Shown: positions 16,856-59,800 of the stretch, in pieces
Position numbering within the stretch: the stretch's first letter is position 1
Layout of the letters: the number at the start of each line of letters is the position of its first letter
NCBI GenBank assembly: GCA_965202585.1
Contig: OZ241833.1
Span: forward strand, 47,554,001 to 47,618,000
DNA: 64,000 nucleotides
Source: Thalia democratica
Lineage: Eukaryota
Direction of reading: 5' to 3'
The notes under the pieces: generated by a model
The model's input: only the letters and a program-made list of their open reading frames with translations
Told to the model about the DNA's origin: nothing
Database searches by the model: none
Position numbers and translations under genes: made by a program

Positions 16856-16998
16856 CTATGTCAAGGTGACCTTGAAGTATATTTTTATATTTTAGGAGAC
16901 TTAAGACTGTCAACAACAACTTCAAAAGATTTATTTTTAAAGCTTTTTGAAAAAAGAAAATGCATTGCGTACTTAAAGTTGAAAGTTATGGTATACTA

Positions 16999-22319: not shown

Positions 22320-23135
22320 CAATTGTTAATAAATTTGTCTCACTACTTAAACTGGCTCATACTTCAGTTTTTAGTTTCCAGCTAATCAAACTGTTTTACT
22401 CAAGTCTTGCATCAATACAGACAACTTTTAAATGTTTATACAGAGACCTCATACAAGATGGTTGCCAAATTTTACTTCAAAGACAACCGAGTCCGCTCCA
22501 AAGAAGTCTCATTCATGACGCAAAAGAAGTTACAAGTAGAAATGTCAACTGAGCAACCATCAACAGTTTAAATGTCAACCGAAGGCACAACAGTTGAAAT
22601 GACAACTCAAGGAGAAATGATGTTCGAACTTTCGGTTGAAAACGTCATCGATAGCAGCGCAAGCATACTGATGACAACTAGCAATGACGTCAGAGCTGTT
22701 GACGTCATATTCGCGTCATCGGTCCTTCCCCAGCCCATCAGGCAACGACTTACGATGTACAAGAAAGTGAACGTGTTCAGATTCACATCATTGTAAATGT
22801 TATAAGTTATTATCCATTAAAAGACATAAAATGCATTTTTTATCTATAAACTTAAAAAATTGATGATGATCAAGCTTACCATATTCCGATTCAGATCGCT
22901 GCCTACTGGTATAACTTTTATGATAAATTTATTAGTGTAATAGTTACAAAAATTATAATATAATTTCTTTTACTCATATACTAAATATTTTATTTATTTT
23001 TCTTCTATAACTTGCAACAAAGCTAATATTTATGCAAATTAATAGATCTTTCAAAGCATTTAAATGTCTAAAACTGAGGTATTTTCAGTAAAACTTCAAA
23101 CATATTTCATAAAAATTCTTATTCTTGATATGTTC
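22320..23135 (+). pseudogene. Inverted, decayed partial copy 2 of the giant gene (exon 44849-44478 plus both flanking introns)
   Basis: 22446-22796 matches the parent exon. Flanks match the parent introns (e.g. aaaaaattgatgatgatcaag...cgattcagatcgctgcct). TAA at 22569-22571 is shared with copy 1, and the donor site is deleted. Confidence 0.92.
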
Positions 23136-24150: not shown

Positions 24151-25587
24151 TTTGTTTAAAAGATAGTTTTTGTTTATTTTATTTTTGAATAGTTAAAGTT
24201 AAATATTAATGTGGCAGGTAAAATTACATATGATGTAACACACTCACTTTTCCCTAGAAAACGTTTATTGTTGCAATGGGTAGAGTTTGAGACTGATTTT
24301 TTTTTTACCATAAAAAAAAAAAAATAAAGTAGTTTTGTTAATTTTGGTATCTGGTGTTGTTAAAGAAAGGTTTCATTAAGTAAAATTGAAATAATTATAT
24401 CTGATTAAAATACTACAAAACATTTTTAGGAATTTAATAATTATTGAAACGTTAAAGTTTATCTATTTCTTTATAGTACGAGTTTAAATTTGAAGTTGTT
24501 AAACTATATTAAAAAAAAAAAAAATTGTATAAACCAGTAATGCTCTTTAACAAAAATAAAACTATATACTTAAGGCGTTGACTAATAGCTATTTTTGCAA
24601 AAGTATAACTATCTGCTTGAATGACTTGTATTTTTTTTATTCTTACAATTAACTTCACTATAGTTCATATATATAATAAGTAGTTTTTAAATCACCAAAC
24701 TAATAAGAAAACTCTGTTTATTAATTGATTTTAGAAAAAAAGCGAGATTTTTTTAAATTATAAAAAATAATGTTGAATCAATTAATAAAAAAATAAAAGA
24801 TAAAATTTTCTAAACAAGTAAAAAATAAATTGAAATTTTAACAAGGTTAGTACGTAAAAAATTTTAAACTAGTTTTGTTTGTGCTGAATTTTTCAAAATA
24901 AATGAAGTTGGCAGCACATACTTCATAAAAAAATAATTAAAAACAAAAAAGGCACATCATATACTTTTGGCCCGGAAATTACAAAAACATTCAAAAAAGT
25001 AGCGATGTTTTAAAGATAATTAAGTTTTAAATAATATAAGGTATTAACGAAATCGAAAAAAATAAAATTTGTTGAAATTTTATAACAGTATGACAAAAGT
25101 AAAACACACTGAAATATAGTAAAATGCTGTTAGATGAATGTTTATAATAGTTTTGTATTTTTATTGTACAGTTTTTAGGTAGACTTAAAAGCGCTAAAAT
25201 AGAAGTTATTGAGGTTAAAAACAAAAAATCTCATAACATGTTCTATACTAAGAATACTTTCAAAAAGTAAAGTTATTGAATCTAACTAAAAAACAGTAAA
25301 TTTAAAATAAAACTTATAAACGTTGAAAGAGCGATTTAAAGTTTTGCTATGACGTCACAACTAAACAACTAGGACTTTTCAGAGCTCTAATAACCATTAG
25401 AGGCCATCATAAAAGCTCAAAGGACAAAAAGGCAAGTTCTTGGCACTGCGGCCCCGACCGTAAACCTTTAACACATTTTTATATAAAAAAGTACCGTTGA
25501 CGAGACGCTCGTTCTGAAATTAATAAGAGAATAAATATTTTTGGAAGAGCTACTCAAGACCGCTTCTTTTTCCTGTCAAGTTTGTCT

Positions 25588-26816
25588 TCAGTCGTCCTTG
25601 GACGATTCCTTGTTGTACTTTGTCATCAGGTTTTCCCACTCAGGCAGCAGGTAATCGGCGAAAATCTCGTTGTCGACTTTGTACGCGTTCAACTCGCTTG
25701 CCAAAATCGCTCCTAAAAGTTTTAAAAATACTTGGATGAACGGTATTTTTTAACAATATGTATATTTAATAGCATTCAGTTCGTCTTTAAGAGTTAAATG
25801 TATCGAAAATAGGCTGTATTTAAATATTGTATAATAATAGGAGGAAACAAATAAAAGACAAATCTTTTATCAATACAATCGACTAGATTTTAAAAATATT
25901 TTTGTAAACCTTTTTTTTCAAACTCAAATAATTTTTTACAATACAATTATAGCAATGGTGTTATTTTTTTTCAGAAACATCTAAATTTTTTTTTTTAATA
26001 AACTGAATTGAAAGTATTAAGGTACCTAAAGTCTTAAAACTTTTTTAATTTTTATTTTCTACACTAAAAAACCTTAGTCGTAGGTTGGTTGCATACAAAG
26101 AATAGAAGTTTGTAATAAAAATATTAAACTAAATACACAAAAAAATAAGTTAATTCCAAACCTTTAGTCTTAGGTTGGTTGCATACAAAGAACAGGCATC
26201 CGTTGTAATCCACGTGCAGCTGCAATGTGACGTCACAATGAGGTCTGACGACCTCTAGTGGACATCTTTCAGGTTGGGGAGTCAAGTCGAGTTCGGTGGA
26301 CAGTTGGATCTGGTATTTGACGAAGGACACCGCCCATACGTTGAATGTTTGCAATCTATTAGAAATAGAAAAATACCTTGTAAATAGTTTTGTTTAACTT
26401 TGTTTCAATTAAGTTAAATTAGGGCGATGTCGCCAAATTTGGGGCTGTCAAGTAACCAGTAAGGCGGCAAAAAAGTAACCAACTAGATATCTAATAAAGA
26501 AGGCGAATAATTTTAAACTTCAAATTTTTCTCAAGAAATATAAATCTCTCCTTTAGTTTAATAATTCTTAATTACAATTTCAAAAGTGTAATGTTATTTT
26601 CGATCATGGATCTAACTAATCTGTAAAAATTTTGAAAAACTTTAAGTAATTTTTATTTTTTACTAGTAAGTTATTAAGTGAAACATTTTAGAGTGTAGTT
26701 ATACATATCTCTGTAATTAATTATTATACTTTACCTCCACTTATTGTATTGTTCTCTCCATTTGTTATTTTCATCATTTTCTGTGTACTCTACCATGTTT
26801 CTTGCGTTCGGATCAA
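25588..26816 (-). CDS. Last three exons of the giant gene: WAT-like helix, 4-Cys antistasin-like module, second WAT-like helix, stop
   Basis: Spliced translation: FDPNARNMVEYTENDENNKWREQYNKWRLQTFNVWAVSFVKYQIQLSTELDLTPQPERCPLEVVRPHCDVTLQLHVDYNGCLFFVCNQPKTKGAILASELNAYKVDNEIFADYLLPEWENLMTKYNKESSKDD*. Confidence 0.85.
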
Positions 26817-29800
26817 CTTTAAAAAAACAAACATGTTGAAAACTTTATTTCTGCATACGAAAATAAGTGCACGTATAATTTACATTGAAAAACTATTATG
26901 ATCTATAAGCAAGCAAACTGTAAAACAACAATAAAATAAAACTTACAAAAAATCTAACATACAGTTGAAAACTTGTATTTAATATTTTTATTTACGTTTT
27001 TGCTTATTTTTAATAAACTCACAGTCGATGGTGCTGACTTGTTTTTCTGCTCTCTTTGTGACCATTCCGTTAGTTCTAGCAACCAAATTGAAGTTGTACT
27101 CTTGTTCTGAAATAAAAAGCATAAGTTTTTGTTTTAGTTTTATGATGGTAGATAGCTAGCGTTCTAAAGTATTTGCCAAGATTCTGCAACATACTTTCTT
27201 AAAAGTAATTTAAACTTTAGTATGTTTGTTTCATGGATGTTGATAAATTCTTAAGTTTTGGTATTAAATAGATACAAACACAGTATACACTTTAACAAGA
27301 AAATTTTGGTGTATGTTGGTATAAACAAGCTTATGTTACTACTATTTGTAAAAATAAGTATAATCATTTACCAGGTTTGAGGTCATAGAAACAAGCGAAC
27401 GTGAAAGGTCCTTGCATGGCGTTCAATGTTTGGAAGTCGTCGGAAAATCCTTCGTATGAGTTCAAACTTGCTCTGTCCATGGATACTGTGAACGATTCTT
27501 TGGCGTTCTGAAAATAAATTTGTATCTAAAATTTTTCAAAAATATTCACGTAAATTAAAGAAAAACAATCAGAAGACTACACAAAGTATACTTGTGCAAA
27601 ATACTAAAAGTAATTTACTAAATAGTATACTTTAAAACCAAGTATTAAACTTAATAAAAAAAAAACCTTTTTGTTTCTGATTCTAACACACGCAGTTTCA
27701 TCATCTACTCTAATGATTTCAAAATCATCTGTAAAAAGTTTGTTACTTATCACTAGTTTGTTACTTATATTACTTATGTTCAAACCAAATGTTTTGTTAT
27801 ATTAGCCACGACTTAATGATTTCTAAGTTATTCGACGTTTATTTACATTTCTTGGAAAATAATAACTAAGTTTTTAAATGAAATCCATATAAGTTTCAGG
27901 ATTAGAAGTTGTTAATAATTTTCTAGTGTATAAAATATTGTGAATCAATGTTTCAAAGCATTCCGAAAACTTGTGTAAAATACATAATACCTACCAGCTT
28001 CAGTTGCAAATGATATTTTTTCTTCAATAAAAGTTCCATCCATAAATGCTACTTTAATTGAAGCAGTGAAGTTTGTGCCTGAGAAAAGTTTTTTTATTTT
28101 TAAGAACTTTTTATATACGAAAATCATTTTAAATAAAATAATTTGGTAAAATTTTAACGCATAATAAAGTTATCATCAAATATTTAACTTGTTATATCTC
28201 ACAAGTTATATAAATATACAGCTGGAAAAGATAAAGACTAAAATATATACTAGTTGACGTTTCCATAAAATGTATCAATAAAATAAACTTGATTAAATTT
28301 GCTTTCTTTGTAACTAAACAATAACTGACTTTACTTTCAAATTTTTTCTACTTTAACTAGTACAAGTGTTTAGATTACAAAACACTTTAACAAGTAACAC
28401 AACTCACTAAAGATTATTATAATTTATACTTTGCAGCATTGTTACCATATAGTGACACTTCAACATTATTTTTAAAAATTTTATTGAAAATACTTTATAT
28501 TTACACAAATGTTATTTTTTTAAAACTTTTTAACAATATCGTTACGCAATATTGACCGCATTAATTACATTTTCGTGAAAATATTTCAGTACTTCCGATT
28601 GCGCAAGACAGTTTTTTAATATAAGAGTTTTTTGAATGCCTAAACTTACCGCTTTAACCAGTAGCTGTACTACCGCTCGACATTGAAAGTTTAAAAAAGT
28701 AATATAAAAAGAGTTTAAAGTTGTTCAAACTTAAATAGCCTAAGCTAAAATTGAAATGATTAATACTTGATAATGTTTATATGAAAACCAACATATATTA
28801 AGTAAAAATGAACACAAAGTAAAAATGTTAAACATTTATTCTCTGAAGACTTTAATGTAGAAATTTTTACCTGTTATAAATTTTTACTACGCAAACACAT
28901 AGCAAATAGTAGAATGCTATTTTACAGTTATCCTTGTTTAACTTTATAAATAAAAACAAAAAACTTCAAATATTTCATCCTAACAAATTCTAATACCAAC
29001 CGGAAGCAAGAGGTCCGAGTTTGACGGGGGTCACCCTTCCCACCCTAGCAACCGTGATGACGTTCGGTTGCGTGGCAACTGAGCTGAACAACGCCACCTG
29101 GAACGTTGTGGCCGAACCCTCGGGCGTGGTGACCATCAGTTCCGCTTCGCTGGTTTCCACCCTAGTGATTTCAACTGTGACGTCATCGTATGAGTACGAG
29201 GAAGTAGTTTCCGGTTCGATGGTGGTTTGGGCCATGGTTGTCATTTCTATTTGTAGAAAACAAAATATATATTATTCTATTTATAATAATCAAGTGCGCT
29301 CGTTATAATTTTCGCTGGATGCAAATTGTTATTTTTTGAACCTTAAATCATAAAAGAAAACCATGACCGTAATACTTTGCGAAACAAAACTAATAGTAAT
29401 CATTGTAAGAACTTTATAAAAAAGGTTGATAACATAATGATATGTAATATAAAGTATCATTTACAAAGCAAGCACTTCAAAATATATCAATAAAACATCA
29501 TAATACCTGGATCAAATTCAGTAGTGAAGTTCTGGATGACTGTCATTGAAGTTTTATCAAACTTGTTTGCTACCAATACGACACGGTACCTTGACCCTTT
29601 GAACAAACAAAAATGAATTAGTAACAACTTTAAATTTGAACAAACGTAAACTGAAATTTCTTTAAATTAAAGTTTAACCTTAAAATGCAAAGCTGAACTT
29701 AGTTATCAAAAAATTACTTCAATTTTTTTCGTCAGTACCTTTTACAAAAAATATTTAGAGTGACTTTATAAAGTTGTCTTAGTAAGTAGTAAACTTCTTT

Positions 29801-32800
29801 GTTAAATAGCTTCAGTAAAATCAAGCTAACCATAAGTATAATTGATAAAAGTTTTTAGTGAAAATAGTAAAAATTGGGTTTTTGTATCACATCAAAATAA
29901 GTACTATTATACAATTATTTTGAGACATTTCTTTACATACATAAATTGCTGTATTTGATTAAAAACTCTTAAAACATTTATATATTTTCTAATAATTTTA
30001 CACAAACCATGATTTAGAGGCCTCAACTCGAAGGTGGTTACTTCGTCCCTCCTTCTGAAGCTCATCTTGTTCGGTTGAGGGTTTTCCCCCTTGTACAAGA
30101 ACAAATCGAAATGGTCCACGCGATCGTCGCTGACAGCCAATAAGGTTGCTTCATTCATTCCAATGTTGACAACGCGCATGGAGAACTGAATTTTTATCAA
30201 AAGTTTTCGATAAACTTTAAGACATACTTTATTAACAATAACAATTACGATTCAAATTATACAGTTTTAAATAATTTAGAATAAAACAAAACCAAATATA
30301 GTGGATAGCCTGATCGAGTTAAAAGTTTTCTTGTCATTTTCAATAGCTTTGTTTTTAGATTGCTCAATAAAACTTTGCCAGAATAAGCTAAAGTTTCTGA
30401 TGGTTTTTCAAAATTTTCATTTACAAAAATTATCTTCTTAGAAATTTACGACAACTTTATAGTTCTTGTCAGCTGAAAGAAATCTGCACATCTAAGTGTA
30501 AATTTAAAACTTTCAAACTTTGACTTACTCAATTTATGATCAGTATTAAAACTTGGCGAATATAATCTTAAGTTATTTACAAGCTTAAAATGGTTTTTCA
30601 AAAATTTTATTTTATGAACTAACTTCTTAGAAATTCACTCAACTTTTTAGTTCTTATAAGCTTCTTTTGTTTTAGAAATTAAATGTAAACTTAAAACTTT
30701 CAAATTTTTGAAATCTCAATTAATTATCAATATTAAGTTAGAATCAATACTAAAAAATCATTAAGAGAGCTTGATAAATTTCGTCGATTTCAGCATTTAA
30801 AAAAATGCAAATTTACAAACAAACTTAAACCTCGATCTCTGCAACTTGAGTTGTTGGTTGCACAGTAGTGACGTCATCTTCCTCAATTACGCCCTCAGTG
30901 GTGAAATTCAATTTTATTTGTTTTCTGCTGAAATCGGTGAAATACCCAACTATTTCAATTTCGTATGTTGTTCCTGAATTGACGTTAATAGTTATTGATA
31001 TTGACGTCTTTAAACTAAAAATAGTTTTACTTTTTCGGTTTGAAAATAACATAGCTGCATAGAAATGATTATCTGATTAAGTTATCTAACAATTGGTACA
31101 TTCTCGAAGTTCGACTTAAACAATGACTAGGAATACTATAAGCTGTCATAAAATATTTATTTTTTACATTGTTTAAGAGAAACTAAAATTATTTCCCACC
31201 AGATTTTAGTTGCGAGATTGTCTTGTCAACGAAGTTCTGTCCCTGCAACATCCTCACTCTCTCCGGTCGGGGGAAAGCCCTCATGGGATCATCTATGACG
31301 TCATAGACGAACATTTCAACCCTGGTGACGTCACTTCCGCCGAATATCATCAGGTCCGCGTCGTTTTCTCCAACACCGGTGACGTCGACGAAGAATCTGA
31401 GCAAATAAAATTGTTGATTATTAGAGAACAATAATGTATTGGAAACATAATTGAAATCACTCAGTGTTAAACTGTTTAGCACTTTGTTGCACACCAGTAT
31501 TAAGAGTTCGAAGTTGTTTTATGTATAGAAAATTTTACAATTTTACAAAATGTTTAATATTGATCAGTATTTAAGTATAAATATTTTACTATCACTCTTG
31601 GTAATTAGATTGAATTAAAATCTAAAGAGTGTTTTTTTTGTTTAAGCTACCTGATATCCATCATGTTTGTAGTGACGTCATCAGGTGCATCAGTCACGCT
31701 TCGGTCCTTCAAAGTGGTGAACCTGGTTTCGGTTGTCATGGAAACCGACCTGTCGCTGAGGAGGCTTCTCACTTCAACAGTGTACTTCGTTCCTGAGTAA
31801 AAGTGAATAAAAAGGGTTACTTTTGCATAAACTCTAAATTAATTTTCGATTCTGATACGAAGCTTATCAAACAATATTTTTTTGTTTTACTCGTGACAGG
31901 CTGACAATAAAAAACTCTCATGTTTACCTTATAATTTACAAATACCATCTCACCTGCCGAAAGCGCGTCGAACAAAACCATTGTGACGTCACTGTCCCTC
32001 GTTACAAATCTCCTGTTGGGAAAGTAGCTGCTTTCTTCGAACAGCATGACGTCATATGTCATTACGTCATCGTCCGAGGAGAAAATGACAAGTCTGGCGC
32101 CATCTTGCGTCACTTCTGTTACCTGCACAGCCAACTGTCCGCTAGACGGCGTGGTTTGCGGTTGTTGAGTTGTTTGTGTGACGTCGTCGCCGTTTGTGAC
32201 AAAGTCGAGTTCTCTGACGTAGGTTTCGTCGCCCATGGCGTACACCTTCAGCTTATAGCTTGTTCCTGAAAATTTTTCGTTGATATAAGTTTAGTTTTAA
32301 CGAAAGCTTGTGCATGTGATAAATAATTATACGAAAGTAATAAGCTTATAATTGTGGGAAACTTTTTGTAAAAAATGCAGTAAAAGCTTGTTTTAACTAA
32401 ACTCTAAAAAAGAAATTTTCAAATTAAAAAAAATCCTAAAGCTACCTATAAAACTGTTTGCAGCTCGTCAAAATTAAGTTTCTTCATTCGTACTAATTTT
32501 TTAACTAAAAAAAACAACTCTCAAACCTGGCAATAGGGGTTCGAGGACGAACTGGCTGATCCTGCCCTGCCTTGGGAACATTGACTTCCTGATCACAACT
32601 GGGGAATCACCCAGATAGTACTCGAGTTGGAAACTGTCAAAATTTGCGGAGGAGTAGACTGCTAACAGGGCGGTTGATGAGGAAACGTTGAAAATGAAGG
32701 GTTCGAACAGTTGGAGGAGTTGGGTTGTTGTGGATTGTGTTGTAGTGGGTTCTTGAGCTGTTGATAGATGTCATTGTTAACAGTTAAATAACTATGTAGC

Positions 32801-35800
32801 TAACAAAAATTTGTCAATTTAGAATTGTTATTTCTTATTATACTTTTATCAATCGATTAGTCAAGAATTGTAGATCTGTAGATAGTTTTAAAAAGATTAC
32901 AACAGATAGCTTTGTAAGTATCTAGAAACAACTTTTTACACTAATTCAGAAGTATATTCAATTACAAACTAGTAGGTCTTGTGGTTTGTTGCCTGGTCGT
33001 TTCCTGCTGAGTGTACATGGCTTGTTTTGATTCGAATGACGAGCTCTCCTTGCTCATAAACACGCTTCCGTCTTTCAAGTAAGCTCGCACGAATATCGTG
33101 TACCGGGAACCTGTTACAATGTGAGGTTTAGTTAAGATGTTCTTTTTTAGTTTTGTGCTAATATTATTGGATATACAAAATTAAACTTTAGTACTCAAAT
33201 AATTCTTTAAAATTTAAGTTTTGGTCTTATCTAAATAACAGTTTATAGTTCATCAAAAAATTTTTATAAATCTAACTTACTTAAATAAACTTCATAAATA
33301 CTTATTTCAACAAAAAATACGTTTTCTACATAGAATTGACAATAATATTATTTAATTAACTAGCTTTTGATATAATGTTACATTATGGCTTATTTTGAGT
33401 AAACTGTTGATTATACATTAGCTAGGTAAAGAAAAAAATGTTATAAAAAAGTTATTAAATACTTATTCAATTTAATGATTTATAAGCATATTTAAACAAT
33501 ATTGTTACAAAAGCTCTCAAGTAGTTGACAAAATATTTTAATAAAAAACCATTTCTACCGGATGTTTACACAAAAGTTGATATTTAAAACTCATTAAATT
33601 TGTGGTAAACGACACAAACTTTAGCAAAACTTTTCATGTATTTTGAAATTTGGTGTACCTATAATTTGTACTTAATTACATAAAACACCGCATATAAAAG
33701 TCTCTAGGCAATATAAAACTCTTTAACGAGAATTTAAACTATGCGTTGGTATTTTTGCAGATTTTATATTCTCTTAAACTTTAACAACTTTTTTTTCTAC
33801 TTTGCTTTACTTAAATTTTTTTCGACTGTTTCTTCAAAAATAAAACGTTACGATTTTAAATTTTGCTAGATTATATAAAGTGGTAACTTTTTTACGTGTT
33901 TTTATTATTAAAGTGCGATCTTTAATTTTTTATGAAGTATAGTTGTTATAAAAAATAATTGTAAAATTTTTTAATAAATTCAAAAGTAAAACCCAAATGT
34001 CTAATTTAAGCCTCTTATGAATTTAGTTACAACTATAACTTTGTTTGAATTCTAAAATCTAATGGGTTTTTTTTAATTACCTAAACCAAACAATTTACAA
34101 ATACTACATAAGTTTTGGTTCAAGAAACAAACAAGCTTAATCGATACTTAAACTACAAAAATGACACTTCAAAAGGCAAAATTACTAATATGTTACTTAA
34201 TTAAAATATCATTTTTTCAACTAAAAAAACATAATTAAATATCTAAAATCTTGTTTTGAATTAAACAGTAATATGTATATATATATATATATAGTTTACT
34301 CACCAGGTCTCAATGGAGAAAGTGTCTTTTTAACGACAGGAGCCACCCTCCTGTACGACGTGACGCTCGGCACGGTGACGTCATCTTTGTACAGCATGAC
34401 GTCAAACGACGTGACGTCATCGGAAGTGAACACGACGACGTCGGCTTCCTCTGACGCGACCCTCATCACTTGGACGGTGATCATTTTGGTGGATTGCTGG
34501 GTCGATGGGGTGATTGTGACCGGTGCAGTGGTCGGTTCGGTTTCTTCTGTTGAAAAAATTGGTTTTGTTAGATCGTATTTTGAGGTTTGTTTTCTTATAA
34601 CTTTTTTTTCAGCTTTTTATAAAAGCTTTGTTTTTTAGTTTATGTCAAATAACATCTTAAAAACATTGTTAAAATAACAAACATATTTCTACCTGCTTCT
34701 GAGGTCTCGAAAAATTGCTGTCTTGAAACAGAAGTTCCATCAACCATTAAAGCTCTAACCATCACTCTGTAGTTGGTACCTAAAATGAGAATCATTTTAG
34801 TATATTGTCGTGTCATATAGCTGTAGTTACTAACTATAACATTTAACACTTATTAATGGTGTAAGTTTTATTTTTAAGTTGGCTATTTTTAAAATATTAT
34901 CTTTTGATATCTAAACAACAAATAAAATAATATTGAACAACTAGGTAATCTTGCTGAAGTCTTTTTCATAGGACAAAAACTTATTGTTTTAAATGTAATT
35001 TGGTGTCTATTATAGACATTATAGAACTTTAAAATTTTTAAGGTAGTAGTTTTCTAAAAAATTAAGTAAATAAATCCAATCTACTGTTAATTTTCAACCT
35101 GATTCAAGCGGTTCCACGGTTGCCATGGTAACAGCCCCTGTCCTTGGCAAGTAGACCACGTGGGGTACCGAAGAGTTGTGGTACAGTTGGACCTCGTACA
35201 TTTGAACCTTGTTTCCTCCCATGAATGCCATCTCGAAACTGCCGAAATTCAAAAGTTGAGTACTTAAAGAAAATAAAAAAAGTAAAGAATTAGAGATATT
35301 TGAACCTATCAGTTTTCGTATTATAAGAACTATCTGAAAATTTGTTATAAATTAAGACAATGAAAAATTTACAATAATTATGATTACAAGTAAACTATGT
35401 AAAGAGACGTATGAAAACATTTTCTAGTTTTCCTACCAAAAAAAAAACTGAACCATTATCAAACCTGGACTCGCTAGCTCTGGTCACCTTGAAGTCGAAT
35501 ATGCCCTCCAATCCGTCTTCAGAGGTGGTAATTTCGACGCTTGGTGTCGTGAATGAGTCGGGTGTTTCGGTTGTCATGACAACCTGACTTCCGGTGGGGA
35601 AGTTTTCGAAAACGGTGCCATCAAGTGACTTCTGGTCATCAGTTCCTGAAAATCGAGATGAATTGTTTTATTTAAACAAAATTGATTTTTGATTCATAGC
35701 TGTGATTTGTAGTTATCAAAACTTAATATATGTTTGTTTAACTAGACTTCATCGAGTTGTTCATCAAGAAAAAGTAATTTATTTAGTTTGAAATTTTTTA

Positions 35801-47800: not shown

Positions 47801-50800
47801 TAGAAAACTGTTCTTTTGTAGTTACTTCTGTAGTGAAATCTTTCTCAGTAGTTTCATCCATTTCTGTTGTCATTTCTGTAGTCATTTCTGTCCTCATTTC
47901 AGTTATGATTTCAGGATGTGTCATAATTTTGAAATCTGTTGTCATTTCAACTTCTGTCGTCGATTTAGACTCTGTAATCGGTTCATCTGTTGTTGTTTCA
48001 CGCTCTGTAGTCATTTTAGCTTCCGTAGTAGTTTCTTTGTATGACGTAATAATCTCCATAGACGGTGTTGTCATTTCCATCGGTGACGTAGTTCCTTCTG
48101 CTGACGTCATAGACATTGTTGTGCTCTCAACTACAGGCTCGCCTAGAGAGTAGTTTATATTTCAACATATGTTTTACATAACTTGAAAAAAGTTGATCAT
48201 AAATGTTTTCTTAACCATATTTGAAAATAAATAAACTATACGAACTCTCAAGTGACTAGTATATATATTATAATACACTAATTTTGATCAAAAACGTTTG
48301 CTTAAATTATTGTTTATATAAATATAAAGCTTTAAGGCAGCCCGACTTAAATAATTTGTTTTGTACTTACTCAAAGTTGAAAAGAATATTTCTTGCGAAA
48401 TTTTGTCTCCGTTTTTCAAAGTTGCTTCTCCTACGAGTTGGTAATCAATACCTGAAAGAAATGAAGAATGTTATACAAGTTTTATAATTTTTGAACTTTT
48501 AAAATTATTTACCATTTTTGAGTGGTGAGAGCACGACCATACTGAGCTCGTCCTGAGCCGACACCTGTTTGAGTTTGATAAGTTTTTGCGTAAATAATGA
48601 GATGTTGAAAAAATAAACAATTTTTATCATAGAGGTAGTCAAAAACAAACAAAGGCTTTAATGCATCCGCAAAAAGACATGCAGTTTTTTAAATACTGAT
48701 TTTTTTTCAAACAATTTTTTCGATAATCAAAAAATTAACGTTTTATATTCATTAAATAATTTTAGATTGTTATTTAACAACAACTATTAAGCTGAGTGCT
48801 TTTAAGTATATATAAATAAATAAATATATATATATATATGTATAAGTAATCGACCCTGTAACCGAACGGAATCGCTCCCTCCTGGTGGTACAGCAGAAGT
48901 ATGACGTCATCGACCTCGTCGGTGTCGACTCTGACGTAGACGGTGGCGCGGTCGTGGGTGACGTCATCGATCGTCATCGAGAAGCGGTCGTCCGTGACGA
49001 GCGGTTGGTCGGTGGGAGGCGCTGTTGTGTCGAGGGTTTCGGTCTGTTGGGTGGTTTCATCCGCTTGCGTCGCTTCTGAGTTGTAAATTTAATTAATTAG
49101 ATTAGAAAATTGGAACTTTAATTCAGTTTATATTTTTCCATTAGATGCAATTAATTGTTTTTAATACTAGTTTTTTCAATGTTTGTAAATGTTATTCGTT
49201 TTGAATACAGTATTGTTGCTACGATTTGCTAAACACCGTTAAGCTGAATAACTGTAATACAAATATTAAGGTGTTACAAAATGATTGAAATAGATTAAAA
49301 CATAGATTGAAATATAAAGCAATGTTAAAAAATAACCTAATGTAGAAGTGATTGACGTAGAAAATTCGATTTCTTGGGAGAATTTAGTTCCGTTTGTAAG
49401 CTCAATTTCAGTTACTAGTCTGAACGAAGTCTCTGTTGAAGTTTTAAAATCACTTTAGACTTCATAAGACAACACTACAGAAATTAAAAATAACAAAGTA
49501 ATATATCTCAAACTATCTTAAACATTAGCAATCAGGAAAAATCAGGAAAAATCAGGAAGTTACCTGCGGAAAGCCATAATTGACTATCAACAAAATACAG
49601 AATACATAAACAAAACTTCTATGATTAATTATATTACCTTAGTTTCACAAGTGTAAATATTTATTCTAATTTCAACAATTTATCATACAGCGTTATATAA
49701 AAAAAAATTAAATTTAACCTGCGGGAAGGGGAGCCATCCTGATGACCTCCTCGTCGGCCGGATCGCTCTTCGAGTTGACGCTCGGATTAGGGAAGTTCCC
49801 CACGTAGAGATAGAAGGTGACCATTTCGACCATGTCGTTGGTCCGCATCACCAACACCGCCTCCATGTTCGTGAGCGTGTCGATTATGATGCCGAATATC
49901 TCCTCAGCTGTCATGCTGGACACCTTTTGCTGTTGGGTAGTTTCCATGAACATGTCCTGGGTGGTTTCCACAAACATGTCTTGGGTGGTTTCCATGACGA
50001 TTCTGGCTTGCTGGGTGGTTTCAGGTGCCTGGGTGGTTTCTTCCTCTGTGGAAACCTCGGTGGCGGCCTGAGTTGTTATCAGGATTCCAATTGGCTTCAC
50101 AGTTTCTTCTGAATTTGACCTTTCCGCTTGAGCGGTCGCCATTGTTGTGCTACTCACTTCGATCGGTTTGACAAGTTTTCCTTCAGTTGTCACTCCTTCG
50201 CTTGGCCTCATCGTAGAAGCTTCGAACGATTCGGTCGATGATTCGAAAACTTCCATTGTCGACGTCACAGTGGCTGTTATCTCCTTCTCCATCGGTGCTG
50301 TTGCTTCTGTGGAGAAATGTATTAAAATTATTCAAATATCAGTTTTTAGTTTTTGAGTTTAAGTTGCCTAGTTTTGTTGCCTAGCTATTAACCAAAAATA
50401 TTAACAAAGCAGACAAATTAGTTTATTGTTTGTTTTTTAAACTTTACTCAATCTTAAGTTTAGGCGCATTCAATAATATCCGCTAAGCCGTTTAAATTTT
50501 AATAATAACTTTAATCTACAATATACAACTTAAGTTATTGAAATTAATAAAGATATTGAAACCAACCTGATGGTGTTTCAAAGGAAAAATCGTAAACCGC
50601 AACTTCGGCTCCATTTCTGTTGTAACCGAACACTTTGACTCTAAATTCCATTCCTGTATGTGGTTTTTAACAAAGATGAAACGTGAGTAATTTAAGTATT
50701 TACTGGATTAATTTTAAAAAGTTTATATACTTTTTAATTTAATGACACACTTAAACTTGAAAAAACAGGGTACATAAAAGCAAAGAAGGTTTATAAAACA

Positions 50801-53800
50801 AATAATTTAAGTTATGAAAATTCTAGCAAAACAAAAAGTCCAATTGAAATCCTTTGAGCATTAAGTTTTTACCGTGTAAAAGTTTATTATGATATTAAGA
50901 ATTTTTTCGTGAAAACAAAGCAATTATAAATTAAGGTAAAGTTACTAACAATTTTCTAGATAAAAGCAAAAGCTTCACTGAAGTGTTTGCGATTGACTAA
51001 GTAGCATTTTACGCAACATACACCATTTATTATTATTTATTATTAAACTTTCTGACAACATTTATTCAACTAAATAATAAAAGTTCTCTGAATACCAACC
51101 GCTGATCAGGGGGCTCATCTTCAAAGTCGTGACGTCACCGACCTTGTCGAACTCCTGGAACTGCATTTCTCCTCCCATCCTGACCTCAACCCTGTATGAC
51201 GTCACGCTCGAGCTGCTCTCGATCCTCACTTCGGCCGAGTTCTCCGTGAGATTTGTGACGTCAGCGCTGACGTAAACAAACTCTCTTTTGGTTGTGACGT
51301 CATCGGGTTCGGTTGTCGCGTCGTCATCGCTGACAGTCGAAGTGAAGTCTGTTGTTGAGACGTCGAAACCATTGTTGTCTGTCGTGACGTCAAATTCTGT
51401 TGTGACGTCAGACTCTGTTGTCGCCGTCGCTTCGGTGGTGAAGTTCCTTCTTTCGCCTTTGTTGTTTTGTAAAATCATAAAGTATACAGTTTGTATATTG
51501 TTATTTAAAATTTTAGTTTTTATTTTATAAAAACATCTTAAGACAACGGATAAAACTAAATAAATTTAATTCCAAAAGTTTTTAAAATCTTTATAACTGT
51601 GAGTAATTTTTTCACAATTTAATAAGTTACCTTCAGTACTGAAAGAAATCTCTGCAAGTTTCAAACCATCTCCGTCTTTGTCATTTCCAATTATAATTGC
51701 GGTATAATCGGTTCCTGTTAATAAAAAAAGTCTTTATGATTCGCCAGCTAGAAATTTTTACATCGTATAAGCTTATTATAACCTTTTTTTAAAGATGATT
51801 TTTAACATTTTAATATCCTCATTTATGGAAGAAAGAATTAAATAAACGAAAAAATTAAGTCATATTACGTTTAAAGCGCAATTCAAAATCAAGAAAGCAC
51901 CATATATTAGAAAAATACTTTGTAAGATAACTTTGGTAATGCCTTTACGGCTGGGTTATATTAAAATAAAAACTTAAAACAAAAATATATTAACAATTCA
52001 CCCAAAACTTCAACAAGACTTAATCAAACTATCTTGAAAAAATGAAAACATTACAGAGAAAAACATCTAATCAAGAAAATTGTACTATTTATTTAAATTT
52101 TTTCTAAAACTCACAGATACCGTTATAATATCCGAAAGTAACATAAATTTAAAAAATAATTCCCCTAACCTGAAACAAGCGGTTGCAGCAACACCACGGT
52201 GGGCCGGTTGTCGTTCACGCTGGTGAAATTCTGGTCCCCGCCCCGGTCGTTCAGCAGGTTGACCTGGAACTCACGTATGTCCTCACTGCCGAATATCAGC
52301 AGCAGGGCCGCGTTGGGCTGTACCATGGAAACCTGGACGTACATCTCGGTGGTTGCCATGGAATCCGGCTCGTCGGTGGTGGGTGTGGTGGGTTGCGTCG
52401 TCACAGGTTTCACTCCTGGGGATTTTTTTATTGGTATAATTAAGAAGCTATAGTTTTGTAAATTTCAATTAATTTAACTACTTGGATTCTTTTGAACTTG
52501 ATGTTTTCATATTTATTTGTTAAATAAGGGTTTGTTTTTACAGACTTAAAGATTTTTTGTTAAAAATAAAAGTATATTTTCAATGGGTTAGAGATTTAGT
52601 TTTCAATTTTAAAATTTCTACTTTAGTAAAAAAACTTGTACGGATATATGTGACACTGTTTAATTTAACTTTTTTACTTAAGTATATTTGTTAAAGTTAA
52701 CCTTTTGTTTTGAAGTTTACAATCTGTCTTGCGACCTCTTTACCGTAAAATCCGAAATCTACGTCGTCGTAAGCAAGTACTTCGATAGAGTAGTTTGTTC
52801 CTAAACAATAAAAAATAAATGTTAGTAATTGAGTAATTCAATAGATTAGTTTGTTCCTTAACAATATAAAATAAATCATTAGTAATTGATTACTTCGATA
52901 GAGTAGTGTGTTCCTATATAATAAAGAATAAATTAATTATAATTGATTGATTCAATATAGTAGTATATTGCTGAAAAATTAAAATTTAAACATAAGCAAA
53001 TATGATCATTTATGGAAATATATTTGCGTATGTTATTTTTTCAAGTAAAGTGTGTGCTACCATTCTGAAGCACTTTATTGTAAACTATTTGTTGTACTCA
53101 ATTGTTTGAAGCACTATATTACCACTATAAGTTCTACAAAAAGACTATAAAATATCATATAATACTCTACTAATCGAATTATTGATAACAAATTTACTCT
53201 ATTGTTATTGTTAACTAAGTAATATATTTAAACCTGAACCAAAATACTAAAACGATATTATAACCAATTCATACCTGGTTGCAGCGGAGGCAGTTTGCTA
53301 GTTATGACGTCACTGTACTTCGAAACCTGCCTTACCATTGGTTCCTTAACACCCTCTATGTAGAACCTGACCAGGAAGCTCTTTACATTCCTACCTGACA
53401 ATATGAAGAAGTCGGCATCGTTTTCCCTGATGTTGTCAATTTTTACTAATATGGAGTTGTCTTCGGACGGTTGAGTTGTTTGCGGGACATTTGTGGTGGG
53501 TTTCGGCGCTTCGGTCGTTTTTACCGGTTTGACACCTGCAAAAGTTAGTAGATTAAAAAAACATTATTCACTTCTTTTTGTAATTAATGTTTATATGTTT
53601 CTGAGTTTGTTTTCTAAGCTCAGGTTACTTTAATGTCCTAAAGTGTGATACTTTCTATAAAATCTTTTAAGTTTTTACAACGTCAAAGAAATAAACGAAT
53701 AAGTACCCATGGTAACGAAGCTGACCCATTCTTTGGAGACTACTTTACCGTTCATACCATAATTTACATCATCGAACCCAAAAACTTGAACGGTGTAGTT

Positions 53801-56800
53801 TGTCCCTGTTTAAAAAATGCTTTAAGATACTGTTACGTGAATAACACAGTTTTAAAATAAAAACATAAAAGTAAATTGAGTAAAACTAAATTTATCGAAA
53901 GTTTTATAAATAAAAACAAAGTTAGTCGTAACGATTAGTATTTCTTAAGCAAAAATAATTATTGCAATGCAAAAAAAGTTTATGAAAAAGAAAACTAAAA
54001 TAATTAAAAAATACTTCAAAATCATTTAAAACCAGTTCAAAAATAAATTTTAATCAGGTGCAGAGGGTTATTAGTTGTTATAAAAAATAAAAAAAAACAA
54101 TTTTTACCAGGTTACAAAGGTTTATTAGTTGTTTAAAAAAACAAAAAAAAAAAGATTTTAACCAGGTTGCAGGGGTTTATTGGTTATTAAAAATTTTTAC
54201 CAAGTTGCAGAGGTTTATTAGTTATTAAAAAATAAATATAAATTGTAACCAGGTTGCAGAAGTTTATTAGTTAATAAAAAAAAAAAAATTACCAGGTTGC
54301 AGGGGTTCAATTATCTTCATACCGCTCGCCTCACTCGTCTTCTCGACCCTCATCACTTGCGGCATCGTGCTGTCCTCACTATAAACGTACAGCTCGTAGC
54401 TCTTCACCAATTGTGACGACACGATCATCACGTCCGCGGACGTGTGGTCCACTCGCGTCATGTACGGGATCATGGAGTAGTTCGGCTTCTCGGTCCGCTC
54501 TGTGGTTGGGAGGGGGGTGGTGAAGTCGATCATCATCTCTTGAGTGGTTGCTGACACGTCTGCGTTTATTATTGTGGAAATTAAGTAAAAATAAATTAGT
54601 TTTTTTTCTTTAACTTGTAAAAGGTTATGTGCTTCGACGTATATTTGTTTGCTTTTTTGTCCATAAGTAAACGAAAGTTTACTGATATTGAGAATTATTT
54701 TTTTAAATCTTTTAAATGATGATCTAAACTTAAACTGCTTTTTTTGTTCTCTTCTCGTTTGTATCAATATATGCATGCAACATATTGAGTGGTGGCGGAC
54801 ACGTCTGGATTGTTGTAAGGTTTAAGTGAGAATAATTTAGTGCTTTAGCTTATAAACATGGTTCTATGCTTTGACGTATAATAATTTGTTTTGTTTTCCT
54901 ATTCAGTATACAAAGGTATACTGTTATTGAGAATTTGTGTGTACTTTGTTTTATAAAGTCACTAATGGTCTTGTTTTTTAGTTTAATGGTATTGTTGTAT
55001 CTTATAAGCTTCGTATTACTTTGATTGAAAAGCATTTTGAAAAATGCTTGTATAAGTGAAATTAATTATGATTTATTAATGCAATCTTACCTTCCTTAGC
55101 GGTGAACCTGATTGTTTTCATTGCGATTTCGTTTCCGTTCTGCTTCAACTCGTCATTCGCGAAAACAGTCACAAAGTACTTCACGCCTGAAAATAATTCA
55201 GTTCGTTTAATTTCAATAACAATAATTAATAATTTAAAACATAAGTTTTATTATTATTAATATTAACAACAATAATAAAAAACTAAAAAAAAAGGCACAA
55301 AATAACCTTTTCTAATCTATAACCACCTAAAATCTTAAAAAGTTAAATGAACTATGCTAACATACACGCTGAACTTTGCTTAAAAAACGGCAGCAAGCAA
55401 AAACACGATAAATTAACCTGGCGTGGCGATATCGATCTTGACGATTGTGACGTCACTCATCTTGTCCATTGTGATCGACTCCCCGTAATCGGTGAAGCTT
55501 GACACGGAAATTTCAAAGCTCCTGACCGACTCCCCGGCCAGTATGAGCATCTCGGCGCTTTGCGATCCCACGTTGACCATCCTGAGCTGGAGGAAGTCTC
55601 CGGGGATGGTTGAGGTCGGCGGTCGCACGGTCGGTGACGACGTTCCCAATACCGGGTCTGTGAAGTTGTGATGTTTTTTGATCAATTAAAAAACAAGTTA
55701 TCTTTAGATATATTGGGCAGGATAAAGTTTTATTTTTTGTTTAATTTGATTGCTGTTGTCTATATATTTTTGTTACACAGTCATATCGTATGCTAATACA
55801 CTAGTTATAAAAAAAATATAAATAAATATATTTGTTAGTCTGCATGTTTTTACTTCATTTGGTGTAATTTAAGATTTTATTTTGTTACTATACAACTATA
55901 CCTACCATTCGTTTGGAATTGCACAGAGTACTCATCTACGAAATCTCTCAAGTCGTTGACGTAACCACGTACAACTAATAGAAAATTGGTGGCTGAAAAA
56001 AAAGTTTAATATTTGTACGGGAACATTTTGCTGTTTCAATAGCGTTTCAGAATCTATCACGTATATTACAACTCAACTCTAAATTGCATTTAAGTTTTAA
56101 AGTTTTTTTACAAACTCAAATTAGTCTAGATACCAACTTTATAAACCGTCAATAAAAGTTACGCAAAAACTATCTAAAAACTTTTTTATTTGTTTTCATT
56201 TTTTTGATTGAATATTGTTACAATGCTTGCATGCAGCTTGTTTCGAAAAAGAATTTCGAAAAAAGCTGTCTTTGAAACAAAATACAGTTTCTATCCTGAA
56301 GTATCACATATAGTTTTGCTACACCAACCTGCGTCAAGAGGCTCAACTTTGTAGTAAGTGACTTCTCCGATGCGGGGAACCACCTTCTTTTGCGGGTACT
56401 CGCTATCGCCCTTGTAGATCAGCACCTGGTACTCCTGGTAAGTCTCCCCTCCCAATATGAGGATGTCAACGCTGTTCTCTTTGACCATTTCCACCTGGCG
56501 GTAGGAAAATTAAATTTGTTAAGAAGATTCCGTATGGAAGTTGTTATTATTTCGACCTAGATATACGGAAAGTGAGTTTGGTCAGAAGTATTTCAGGGTA
56601 GTTGTTAATATAATTGCATTAATTAATTCATGTAAGAAGTCTAAAGACAGTGTGTTGGAAAAATGTAGTCTAAAGTAAAGAAGCAATAGAAATTTTAAAC
56701 AATGGTGTGTTTTACGCATAGTTGAAGCTAGATTTTAGATTATTATAGAACCAAACGCAAAATTCACGGCTTTTCAAACCTGTACTCTGAGATGCTCAGC

Positions 56801-59800
56801 CTTTTCGGTTGTTGCTCCAGTTTGAGTTTTCATAGTTGTCTCTGGTGATTCTGTTTTAAAATAGTTAGTCATTTACTAAATTTTTATGCTTTTATTTTAA
56901 ATTTAATATTTTATGTGTCTCAACGAAGCGTATGTGTTTAATGTTTTTCTGTAAAAAACGACAAAGTTTTAAGAAATTTAAAATACAGTGTTTTTAATTA
57001 TTATGTATGTTAAACTACTTTAGCTTATTTAGTTTATTCAAGAATCTTGTTTTATAAAGTTTAAACATACAAAACTTTAAACAAAGAATTAAACGAACCA
57101 TCAAATTTTAATGTGTTGAATTCAACAGTTAATCTCAAAAGTTCGCCCTCTTTGGTTCTAGCTTCAACGGAAACCATGTAGAATGTATCTGAAATATTTT
57201 ACTTGTAAATATATATATATATATATATATGTGTTCCCGAGAACACAGCTTTTTTAAGTCAGGTAAGATATTTAGAGAGATGATTGAGATTTAAAAATTT
57301 TGATATAAATATACTATTGAACTTAGATGTAGTATATATAATTTATTTTAAAGTTTAAATGCAGTTTATATAAAAAATTAAAACCAATAAAACATTTTTA
57401 TCTGAAATATTATACCAGTTTTTACATAAATAGCCGCACAGGTATTTCTACCAAAACAAATTTCTGTTATGGCTCATAATTAAGTAATTATAAAAACACT
57501 TTTTGTAATAGTTATCGAACAAAAATAGTATGAATTAAAACCATTTGTTTACTACTTTAATATATATACTTCTGCATTAATTACGAAATATAAGTATAAT
57601 AGAAACTACTTTTACTGAGCTTGTTCAGTACAACACTATAATACCATGTTAAAATCTACCACAGAAAAGCCCATTACTATACACTCAATTAGATAAATAT
57701 GTATAAAAAAAAATTTTCCAACCTTTTTTGAGCTCATACAGTATGAGACTTTATTATCACAATTAAAGAAAATATCTTTACTATAAACGCAAATAAATAA
57801 ATGTATATATAAATTGTTAAATCCATCAAACCTTTTTTCAGTTCGTTCAATATGAGCTTCATCACCTCCTCTTTCCTGTCGAAACTCATCTCCAGCACTT
57901 TCTCCCTTCCCCCCTCCAACACCTCCAGCTTCATGGTTGTGACGTCATCGGGTGACGTGATGGCCAACACCACTTCCTCCGATTGCACGTTCATCACCTG
58001 AGCTTTAAATGTTCTCATCTGCCTGGTCACTGTAATGGTCTGGTAAAAAAATGTTTGTTAATAACACTTTAAATAAAATGTTTTAATATTTAAATTCGGT
58101 TTTTGTTTGCGCTTTGAAAGTTTTTAGTTTTGAGTTACTTTGGTAGTCTGTGTAGAAAATTCGTTTTAATTTTAATAACAATTTGTATATTGATCTAGGA
58201 TGTTTTATCGTATTTGTTTTTTGTCGTTTATGGTTGTATTGTTTGTGTTCAAGCTGCTTTAAGTCATTTATGTTTATCAACATAATTGACGATGTTAACG
58301 ACAAGTAGAGGTTTAACTTTGTCGGTCTAGTAAAGAAAAGCTTATAAACATAAGATATATAACAAGCTGAGTTTATTTTTTTCACGTAAAAACTAACTTC
58401 TTCTGTGGTGGACCTTTCAGGGCATTCATCGGAAGTGATGCACCTTCCATCATGCAGGACCGGCTTGTCATCGGGACACTGGCACTTTGACACGAAGTTG
58501 AAGGTGCACGCGGGGTTGGGGACTTCGCAGGTGATCGTGCAAGCCGTGGCCTGGTTCGAATACACAACTCCCTCGTTCTCACAACCTAGAGAGTTGGTTT
58601 AATTTCAGTTTACTTTAAATTGGTTATTACTTTTCTTAGTGATCTAGTTATGAACATTTGATAAAAGTATTTCTTGCATTAATCAATTGGTTATTACTTT
58701 AACTCTTATTCCATTATAAATTATAAAAATCGAATTTTAGCCATTATAATTCAGTATGCTAGCATTTAAAACACGTAATGTTTGCCTTATGATCTATTAA
58801 AAATCAGTGTTTTGTATATTTATTTTTATATTTCTCAACTCTCACCTTCACAATTGGGTTCTACCCCGCTGAAAGACATGCTGTCAGGATAAGGAGTTCC
58901 TGTTTTCGGGTTGACGCACATGCACACTGTTCCAACCTGTAAATAGTAAATATATATATATTACTAAACAATACGGAGTTAGCATGCACACTGTTCCAAC
59001 CTTAAAAAATAAATTTTTACAACATTGTTTTTCAAAACTCAAATTTTTTTTATCACTATTGTAGTTTGTATGTTTGTATACGTTTATAAAGCTCGAGAAT
59101 TTACACAGAAATAATAAATGAGTAGCACAACAATATTTTGATTGTTAGTTGTTTATTTTATTACTTATTTCAATGTTACGCAAATAATTTCTACCTGCTG
59201 CGTTTGACCGCACTGTACAGCTTTGTAGTTTCCTGTTTCGTCACAGTCAGGAAGCGTCTGACCAGGTTGCAGGTCTTTACTGACTACGTCATATATTTGC
59301 TGGCACGTCATACCTGTAATCAACACATTATGTTATTAGATTTTATTTCATTGACTAGGTTGCAGGATTTTAGATTATATTTCTTATTTTACATTATTAG
59401 TTCGGGGTTTTCGCTAATTACGTCATATATTTACTGACACGTCATATCTGTTGAAGTGTTTTTTTTTGCGTATTTTTTACTATCAGTAATAATTTTAAAC
59501 TGATACATTGTTTGCTTTAGAAATATATATTTCAAGTCAGAATTTTCAGTCAGTCTGTTTTCTAAACACTTTTAGCTAAAATAAGTAGAAATTTGCTGTT
59601 ATTTAAACTCGTACAGATAATTGATCACCTATTTACATTTTAACATCAATATCAGATATTTTTATTAATTGAATAGTAAACTAAATGTATAAGTCATATA
59701 AATTTTTCTTAGAATCTAATTACAAAAATTAATCTACACTTTATTACAAAACAGCTTAGTATGTTAATTGTAAACAACTAAGTATAATTGATAATACGTA

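Follow-up and report, generated by a model that had tools for sequence, protein, structure and literature searches.

Why does one exact eight-letter word, TGACGTCA – the canonical cAMP response element (CRE) of CREB/ATF-class bZIP proteins – recur dozens of times in the coding exons of a single gene? The question is raised by a stretch of 64,000 nucleotides (nt) of the Thalia democratica genome (assembly GCA_965202585.1, contig OZ241833.1, forward-strand positions 47,554,001 to 47,618,000), which was analyzed at its full length and is referred to here as the window; positions are counted from its first letter. Much of it is taken up by a giant gene of the secreted-protein, FN3-like/mucin type on the minus strand. 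A prediction made earlier from the letters of the window (the original prediction) held that the octamer is hugely enriched, that it is confined to exons in two reading frames, and that a DNA- or RNA-level code marks exons. Here, we report that the excess is a property of the nucleotides rather than of the protein, that it overrides codon preference, and that it extends across the genome, and we consider what might read it.

Motif content of the window

Exact search returns 46 copies of TGACGTCA in the window, compared with a mean of 0.48 and a maximum of 4 in 100 dinucleotide-preserving shuffles, in agreement with the roughly 45 copies (fewer than one expected) first counted by eye. The predicted partition is also recovered: 36 copies lie in minus-strand, open, GC-rich exon segments of the giant gene between 26.1 and 58.0 kb, eight in inverted copies of three of its exons (15.2-16.8 kb and 22.7 kb; 92-93% identity), one in the 3′ untranslated region (UTR; 25350), and one in a kelch open reading frame (ORF; 2632). 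The dense clusters noted at the outset are present too, with six copies at 51130-51410, four at 43581-43726, and three at 34376-34419, as are the two reading frames, with 32 of the 36 coding sites read as T-GAC-GTC-A and four as TG-ACG-TCA. Motif density in the coding sequence of the giant gene is 3.2 per kb. The coding set used here is approximate – 47 segments totaling 11,328 nt, assembled from GC islands and open frames – and leaves out some small exons (for example, 48370-48448 and 51630-51715).

The window is 29% GC overall and sharply two-state in composition, a GC-content hidden Markov model dividing it into 16.1 kb of islands at 47.5% GC and 47.9 kb at 23% GC. Given the base composition, 0.24 copies would be expected in the islands and 0.19 elsewhere in the window; 45 of the 46 copies are in islands, and the last (16647) begins one base ahead of an island, within a duplicated exon. 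Exact search found no copy in the introns of the window, where only 0.19 are expected, and this absence is weak evidence because even a 12-fold enrichment would yield only about two copies there. The claimed confinement to exons mostly reflects base composition, and across the genome a minority of copies is found in AT-rich repeat-like DNA. Promoter or enhancer placement near transcription starts is not seen in the window, where 44 of the 46 copies are coding or in exon copies and the others are those in the kelch ORF and the 3′ UTR; the promoter of the giant gene lies beyond the window.

Codon usage, protein sequence and descent

The excess persists when the encoded protein is held constant. 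Shuffling codon order gives an expectation of 0.53 motifs (maximum 4 in 2000 shuffles), and permuting synonymous codons among positions with the same amino acid gives 2.9 ± 1.6 (maximum 9 in 2000), compared with 36 observed. Restricting the permutation to codons that also share the first base of the next codon raises this to 5.1 ± 2.1 (maximum 13 in 1000), and to codons that share the next amino acid to 12.7 ± 2.5 (maximum 20 in 1000). The check proposed with the original prediction, a shuffle preserving amino acids and dicodon bias, thus leaves the enrichment in place within the window and does not refute it. Among all 8-mers in the coding set, TGACGTCA is the top outlier by excess.

Codon choice next to the motif runs against the usage of the gene, with the non-preferred codons GAT, TAT and AGT forced in front of GAC-GTC. 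Asp-Val dipeptides are encoded as GAC-GTC in 36 of 45 cases, and 32 of those 36 have T before and A after. The Asp codon ahead of GAC-GTC is GAT in 16 cases and GAC in one, versus a background of 60:123 (odds ratio 33, p=7.5e-7); Tyr ahead of the motif is TAT in 4:0, versus 20:78 overall, and Ser is AGT four times and TCT once. The Thr codon directly after the motif varies freely (ACA 12, ACC 5, ACG 3, ACT 2). Avoidance of cryptic splice sites was considered and rejected, as it accounts for GAC-GTC but not for the preceding T.

Descent of the sites from one another does not explain them either. Flank identity among motif sites is 0.31, versus 0.27 at random in-frame positions, and no direct repeats joining motif-bearing exons to each other were found in the window. 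The repeat copies share only 13-33% identity, and the sites fall in several of the repeat's columns and also in linkers, TTESDVTTEFDVTTDNNGFDVS among them. Repeat descent was rejected as a cause because the flanks are random-like and the sites fall at several repeat positions and in linkers.

These data bear directly on the idea that the octamer is a by-product of a repeated beta-sandwich with a conserved Asp-Val-Thr, C-ending codons and repeat ancestry, to which we give almost no credence. It has in its favor that most sites are in the 22-fold unit read here as FN3-like, in which the strand-start Val is conserved and Asp-Val is the majority at one column, and that the preferred codons include GAC and GTC. 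However, the amino-acid-preserving and dipeptide-specific shuffles peak at 9 and 20 motifs, a non-preferred T-ending codon precedes the motif while the Thr codon behind it is unconstrained, and the random-level flanks and scattered repeat positions and linkers argue against inheritance. Beyond the giant gene, Asp-Val is encoded as GACGTC in just one of nine cases in myosin genes, and the ratio of T to the other three letters combined ahead of GACGTCA is 7:1 genome-wide. A pure protein-level explanation is essentially excluded, and the earlier statement that protein-level selection or repeat descent is insufficient was correct.

Exactness, flanks and protein imprint

The signal is specific to the complete octamer. 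All other 8-mer palindromes together number 37 versus 31.2 expected and are not enriched, and a general tendency to perfect palindromes was rejected on these grounds. The synonymous neighbors of the motif are below expectation, at 2 versus 5.9 for CGACGTCA and 0 versus 1.3 for TGATGTCA. Immediately outside the octamer the flanks are symmetric, with a purine (A/G) at position -1 in 32 of 37 sites and a pyrimidine (C/T) at +8 in 33 of 37.

Sites at which the peptide would permit the motif are mostly filled in the giant gene (36 of 52), including 32 of 42 of the type x-Asp-Val-[codon starting with A] and 4 of 10 of the type [Leu/Met/Val]-Thr-Ser. Only 19 of the 47 exon segments carry a motif, and the other 28 lack it mostly for want of a permissive site, so that the motif is not a general exon mark; contrary to the notion that it marks exons, it is present only where the peptide permits. 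Along the exon, counts by quintile are 3, 6, 11, 11 and 5, and the minimum distance to a segment end is 23 nt, a central placement that does not bear out the suggested splicing enhancer. The composition of the protein is itself displaced: the giant gene has 42 Asp-Val dipeptides versus 18.1 expected and 33 Asp-Asp versus 11.4 (a two- to three-fold excess), and Asp-Ile, Asp-Leu and Glu-Val are at expectation.

Conservation and turnover

Three protein searches yielded five Tara Oceans metagenome contigs with homologues of three motif-bearing exons at 76-91% protein identity, which may be orthologues or paralogues. Divergence was counted over four of these contigs (five exon comparisons), since two of the five represent one lineage, together with two paralogues within the window. 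Motif columns differ at 3 of 159 positions, versus 183 of 1879 in the rest of the exons (p=2.6e-4), and thus diverge about five-fold more slowly; at third codon positions the figures are 2 of 60 and 94 of 620 (p=0.010). An alternative alignment gives five differences in motif columns rather than three and leads to the same conclusion.

All six motifs of the 51 kb exon are retained in one homologue (L035), and another (L034) carries the motif, with GAT, at one of two unrealized sites of the 31946-32266 exon, where the window has GAC. Conservation of this kind combined with turnover is what weak or moderate purifying selection, or a conversion bias, acting over many redundant sites would give. 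A scan of JGI metagenomes for relatives of the six-motif exon returned no match.

Genome-wide distribution

The 802 Mb assembly contains 56,755 copies of TGACGTCA, making it 6-12 times more common than palindromes of the same composition (ACTGCAGT, 9,487; TGAGCTCA, 8,961; ACTCGAGT, 4,819). The heptamer GACGTCA is preceded by T in 113,510 cases and by A, C or G in 15,655; since T dominates although C-ending codons are preferred, the octamer-level specificity seen in the window holds genome-wide. Close pairs of TGACGTCA, 1-30 nt apart, number 1,781 versus 8 for the control, and their spacing is a multiple of three in 23 of 39 distinct sampled pairs versus 13 expected; this three-nucleotide periodicity is a coding signature. 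About eleven myosin genes, from 30 loci, have one motif in 8.2 kb of coding sequence versus 0.11 expected, and only six permissive sites; for myosin and the kelch ORF pooled, two of seven permissive sites are filled – a small sample – versus 36 of 52 in the giant gene.

Not all copies are coding. The motif is flanked by four A/T letters on each side in 5,012 genomic copies, many of which are ATTATGACGTCATAAT, and AT-rich spacers separate about one third of the close pairs sampled. Pairs of the 16-nt palindrome ATTATGACGTCATAAT stand approximately 2.42 kb from each other (e.g. G000:C1 4856755/4859176 and 15059269/15061691), an arrangement suggestive of the two termini of a mobile element. At C1:4.714-4.724 Mb there is another recurrent module, whose two motifs are spaced by 29 and 21 nt.

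The giant gene and neighboring features

A beta-type repeat of 85-90 residues occurs approximately 22 times in the giant gene, with T-rich linkers and 13-33% identity between copies. The repeat ends in L-x-P-L-x-x-G and the following exon begins x-Y-x-V-x-V, from which we read it as FN3-like; Pfam searches with single repeat exons did not confirm FN3. There is a 1.4 kb mucin-like, Thr/Ser-rich exon at 39.9-41.3 kb, and Cys-rich exons at 58-64 kb give the sole Pfam match, a weak one to TIL under the cut-off (E=0.0065). Contigs of sequencing run X4 skip minus-strand GT..AG introns at 48142-48369, 48449-48509, 49076-49336, 51456-51629 and 52415-53273, and span all ten motif-bearing positions compared between 47.7 and 53.6 kb; the gene is therefore expressed and those segments are true exons. 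The motif-bearing features of the window are as follows, "FN3-like" denoting the repeat as read above.

2632-2639, plus strand: motif in the kelch-repeat ORF (Ala-Asp-Val-Arg), at that ORF's only permissive site
15196-16877, plus strand: inverted copy of the 45.3, 44.6 and 43.6 kb exons, open frames, six motifs (15237, 15273, 15982, 15997, 16647, 16779)
22441-22789, plus strand: second inverted copy of the 44.6 kb exon, two motifs (22685, 22700)
25350-25357, minus strand: motif in the inferred 3′ UTR, about 230 nt past the TGA stop at 25588-25590
26157-26351, minus strand: coding exon segment, one motif (26228); open frame in GC island
28996-29241, minus strand: coding exon segment, one motif (29178); open frame, GC island
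30831-30902, minus strand: linker coding exon segment, one motif (30869); open frame, GC island
31195-31401, minus strand: FN3-like repeat exon, two motifs (31296, 31326)
31650-31796, minus strand: coding exon segment, one motif (31673)
31946-32266, minus strand: FN3-like repeat exon, two motifs (31984, 32047) and two unrealized permissive sites
34299-34550, minus strand: FN3-like repeat exon, three motifs (34376, 34397, 34412)
37550-37759, minus strand: FN3-like repeat exon, two motifs (37627, 37699)
38557-38823, minus strand: FN3-like repeat exon, two motifs (38670, 38715)
42476-42718, minus strand: FN3-like repeat exon, one motif in the Val-Thr-Ser frame (42623)
43507-43803, minus strand: FN3-like repeat exon, four motifs (43581, 43620, 43660, 43719)
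44476-44850, minus strand: FN3-like repeat exon, two motifs 15 nt apart (44571, 44586)
45230-45496, minus strand: FN3-like repeat exon, two motifs (45301, 45337)
47751-48152, minus strand: mucin-like exon, one motif in the Met-Thr-Ser frame (48102); RNA-supported
48852-49082, minus strand: exon, two motifs (48902, 48959); RNA-supported, intron 49076-49336
51083-51457, minus strand: linker and FN3-like repeat exon, six motifs (51130, 51197, 51256, 51295, 51385, 51403); RNA-supported
53276-53539, minus strand: FN3-like repeat exon, one motif (53305); RNA-supported
55416-55673, minus strand: FN3-like repeat exon, one motif (55448)
57839-58042, minus strand: FN3-like repeat exon, one motif (57940)

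The plus-strand segment 15196-16877 corresponds to three successive exons of the giant gene, duplicated as one inverted segment with exon order and open frames preserved. Its copy of the 43.6 kb exon has lost two of four motifs, and a Tara Oceans contig (L031) has identical motif states; because L031 combines these derived states with an intact ORF, the duplicate may be a live paralogue rather than a set of pseudo-exons. Within the 51 kb exon, contigs of runs X4 (RNA-like) and X3 skip an in-frame 45 nt at 51353-51397, which removes one Asp-Val-Thr-Thr unit and a motif from a low-complexity linker and looks like a length polymorphism of a motif-bearing repeat.

Three further features lie outside the giant gene. 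The kelch-repeat ORF (2174-2959, plus strand; Kelch_1, E=6e-33) is a separate gene upstream of the 3′ end of the giant gene. Two GC-rich tandem arrays at 16951-17694 and 19704-20273 are mutually inverted, with an alternating 15/16-nt spacing (a 31-nt unit), a CpG observed/expected ratio (o/e) of about 1.8, several open frames, and zero copies of TGACGTCA. An array of seven copies of a 35-nt tandem repeat lies in AT-rich intergenic DNA at 11537-11925.

CpG content and methylation

Protein binding that shields the motif CpG from methylation decay was one of the mechanisms first suggested, and it is not supported. CpG o/e is 0.92 in the coding segments and still 0.87 without the motif CpGs (580 CpGs remaining, the motif supplying 36 of 616), compared with 0.95 in all GC-rich islands and 0.76 in the AT-rich remainder; myosin loci have values of 0.89-0.96. 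With CpG not depleted in the coding segments, a shield has nothing to explain.

The genome nevertheless contains three tandem intronless ORFs of 873-878 residues (G000:C1:49968705-49997951), all of which encode a full C5 DNA-methylase domain (PF00145, E values as low as 1e-50). Unlike these intact ORFs, C5-methylase matches elsewhere in the genome are split, and the tandem ORFs could be mobile-element-borne or acquired. An intronless myosin-head ORF of 1094 residues (L001; G000:C6:45667159-45672393) has a GC content of 0.36 and a CpG o/e of 0.28; its one permissive Asp-Val site reads TGATGTCA, and the ORF may be a methylated retrocopy. The C5-methylase domains together with the CpG-poor myosin-head ORF make some methylation of particular sequences likely.

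A proposed duplex-DNA element and its possible readers

An exact palindrome with symmetric flanks points to a reader of duplex nucleic acid. Our preferred reading, tentative and a little short of an even prospect, is that selection at the nucleotide level acts on TGACGTCA, together with its preceding purine and following pyrimidine, and that the predicted reader is a CREB/ATF-class bZIP dimer on double-stranded DNA, still the most economical of the mechanisms proposed at the outset. A bZIP is suggested by motif identity, in that the word is the canonical CRE, and is favored because bZIP genes are present (bZIP_1 domains at 11 places in the genome) and because copies with A...T flanks cluster in AT-rich repeat-like DNA; at these noncoding copies neither codons nor mRNA can be the cause, which would place the element at the level of DNA rather than RNA. 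The motif would be introduced at any place where x-Asp-Val-[Thr/Ile/Met...] or [Leu/Met/Val]-Thr-Ser is acceptable to the protein, fixing three synonymous positions, and would also shift amino-acid choice toward Asp-Asp-Val. With introns at 23% GC, only GC-rich coding DNA would yield near-matches, and the protein there already fixes five of the eight letters, such that weak per-site selection might suffice for the other three. The pile-up in exons would follow from these two circumstances, and need not require an exon-specific reader. The resulting gene-body cluster of CRE sites might act on transcription or chromatin of the giant gene.

Several observations weigh against this reading. Transcription factor sites are usually degenerate and CREB tolerates half-sites, and the strict exactness and lack of half-site enrichment do not fit comfortably with a transcription factor: the 24 one-mismatch neighbors of TGACGTCA total 19 versus 20.8 expected, and the half-sites TGACGT and ACGTCA, counted where they are not part of the palindrome, number 9 and 16 versus 9.4 and 14.9 (expectations that include about three from palindromes). 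Position +9 prefers A by synonymous choice (ACA in 12 of 22, ATA in 5 of 6) with no mirror at -2, a sense-strand asymmetry. No TGACGTCA is found in the GC-rich noncoding islands of the window (about 1.2 kb of tandem arrays plus small islands), and a DNA-level site could occupy introns without coding cost yet none is seen there, though this last is weak evidence. In the 43.6 kb exon, each Tara homologue retains only two of the four motifs at 12-17% divergence, the others having been lost via different substitutions. The intolerance of mismatches, the unenriched half-sites, the A at +9 and the empty noncoding islands leave room for explanations at the level of mRNA, drive or splicing.

A signal in the mature mRNA is an unlikely alternative, in which UGACGUCA, being self-complementary, would base-pair with a further copy in the same or a different transcript, or with a trans-acting RNA that has this word too, or would be read by a duplex-binding protein, to affect localization, stability or licensing. 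Every copy in the window is in transcribed, spliced-in sequence, including the 3′ UTR, with introns empty; strictness at all eight letters is more like base pairing than protein recognition; and the asymmetry at +9 is that of a sense strand. However, two motif-rich exons show no folding advantage over dinucleotide shuffles (z = -1.1 and -0.6), many genomic copies are in AT-rich repeat-like DNA with the same A...T flanks, the absence from introns has little power, and a single-stranded RNA reader would have no need of a palindrome. The palindrome is similarly unexpected for a single-strand exonic splicing enhancer or exon-definition signal acting on the pre-mRNA and required by the extremely AT-rich introns, a possibility that we regard as very remote. 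Restriction of the motif to exons in the window is what such a signal would produce, and CpG-rich, GAC-containing words resemble some SR-protein enhancers, but 28 of 47 exon segments are empty, the sites are central with none closer than 23 nt to a segment end, the 3′ UTR copy lies past the last intron, and copies are also present in AT-rich noncoding DNA.

Molecular drive or repair bias has, in our estimation, only a small chance of being correct. Here, in place of organismal selection, repair or gene conversion under the direction of a site-specific binding protein or of a sequence-specific cytosine methylase would turn near-matches into the perfect octamer, in the manner of bacterial uptake sequences. 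The motif behaves like such sequences in its density (1-3 copies per coding kb), in its exactness, in favoring regions where the protein is tolerant, and in its imprint on peptides; the deficit of synonymous neighbors noted above agrees with conversion, and the three tandem C5-methylase ORFs offer a candidate enzyme, the core GACGTC being what we take to be an AatII-type hexamer. Against drive, homologues have lost motifs through several different substitutions, slower divergence of the motif columns is equally compatible with selection, and we know of no drive mechanism of the uptake-sequence kind in animals. Plain GC-biased conversion was rejected outright, because T as first letter displaces the preferred C and the change is AT-ward. 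A broader formulation, which we rate as possible though on the doubtful side, is that a process other than factor binding of the classical promoter type – a sequence-specific epigenetic mark or repair drive, comparable in an animal to bacterial uptake sequences, or a code in mRNA, self-complementary and serving to license or link transcripts – keeps the exact eight-letter word at tens of thousands of coding sites; whichever of these it might be, it would be strong enough to rewrite codons and amino acids.

If confirmed genome-wide, this enrichment would stand out among animals as the clearest example of codon preference and amino-acid choice both giving way to a non-coding signal, with a single exact palindrome occupying most of the coding sites able to accommodate it. 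The long-disputed question of whether exonic regulatory words constrain proteins would become testable, since there is no ambiguity about the motif, which is plentiful and occurs in the natural populations that Tara Oceans sampled. A reader other than a bZIP would imply a new system of genome-wide marking or drive. Annotators of this genome should be wary of Asp-Val-rich peptides and certain low-complexity stretches, which may have arisen as side effects of a signal in DNA or RNA.

Comparison with known systems

In the literature searched, no report was found of TGACGTCA enriched in coding exons of any organism, nor in plankton taxa. Duons, exonic enhancers and bacterial uptake sequences come closest among the systems already described, and the last of these are not known in animals. 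The likeness to the CRE consists of an identical octamer, the purine and pyrimidine flank preference on both sides, and bZIP genes in the genome. Classical CREs, of which a genome has thousands, are promoter and enhancer elements in which half-sites are tolerated, whereas here there are tens of thousands of perfect copies, mostly inside coding sequence, with half-sites unenriched. In fission yeast, the M26/CRE recombination hotspot ATGACGT is bound by Atf1-Pcr1; it is likewise of the CRE type, acts from within an ORF, and has the A...T extension of the noncoding copies described here, but hotspot motifs tend toward loss by conversion rather than accumulation.

The Neisseria DNA uptake sequence (DUS), the Haemophilus uptake signal sequence (USS) and Chi are exact short words present about once per kb, largely within genes and in tolerant frames and protein regions, and they shape proteins. 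Exactness, density of about one per kb, and bias of frame and peptide are common to those words and the motif described here; the differences are that they are bacterial, non-palindromic, and spread by uptake or recombination bias. Exonic splicing enhancers have in common with the motif a nucleotide-level constraint on synonymous sites of exons, but are degenerate, single-stranded and near splice sites, whereas the motif is exact, central and absent from most segments.

Duons were reportedly described by Stergachis et al. in 2013 as transcription-factor footprints in coding exons that bias codon choice. A factor-type motif within coding sequence, codon bias toward it, and constraint at synonymous sites are all found here, with codon bias beyond usage (36 motifs versus 2.9-12.7) and reduced synonymous divergence (2/60 versus 94/620). 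A related kind is the coding exon that acts as an enhancer (PMC3371700). The effects attributed to duons are weak, disputed, and spread over many degenerate motifs; in the giant gene one exact word occupies about 70% of permissive sites, overrides codon preference (odds ratio above 30), and skews dipeptide composition. The scale, exactness and protein imprint of the motif are well beyond the descriptions of duons and exonic enhancers.

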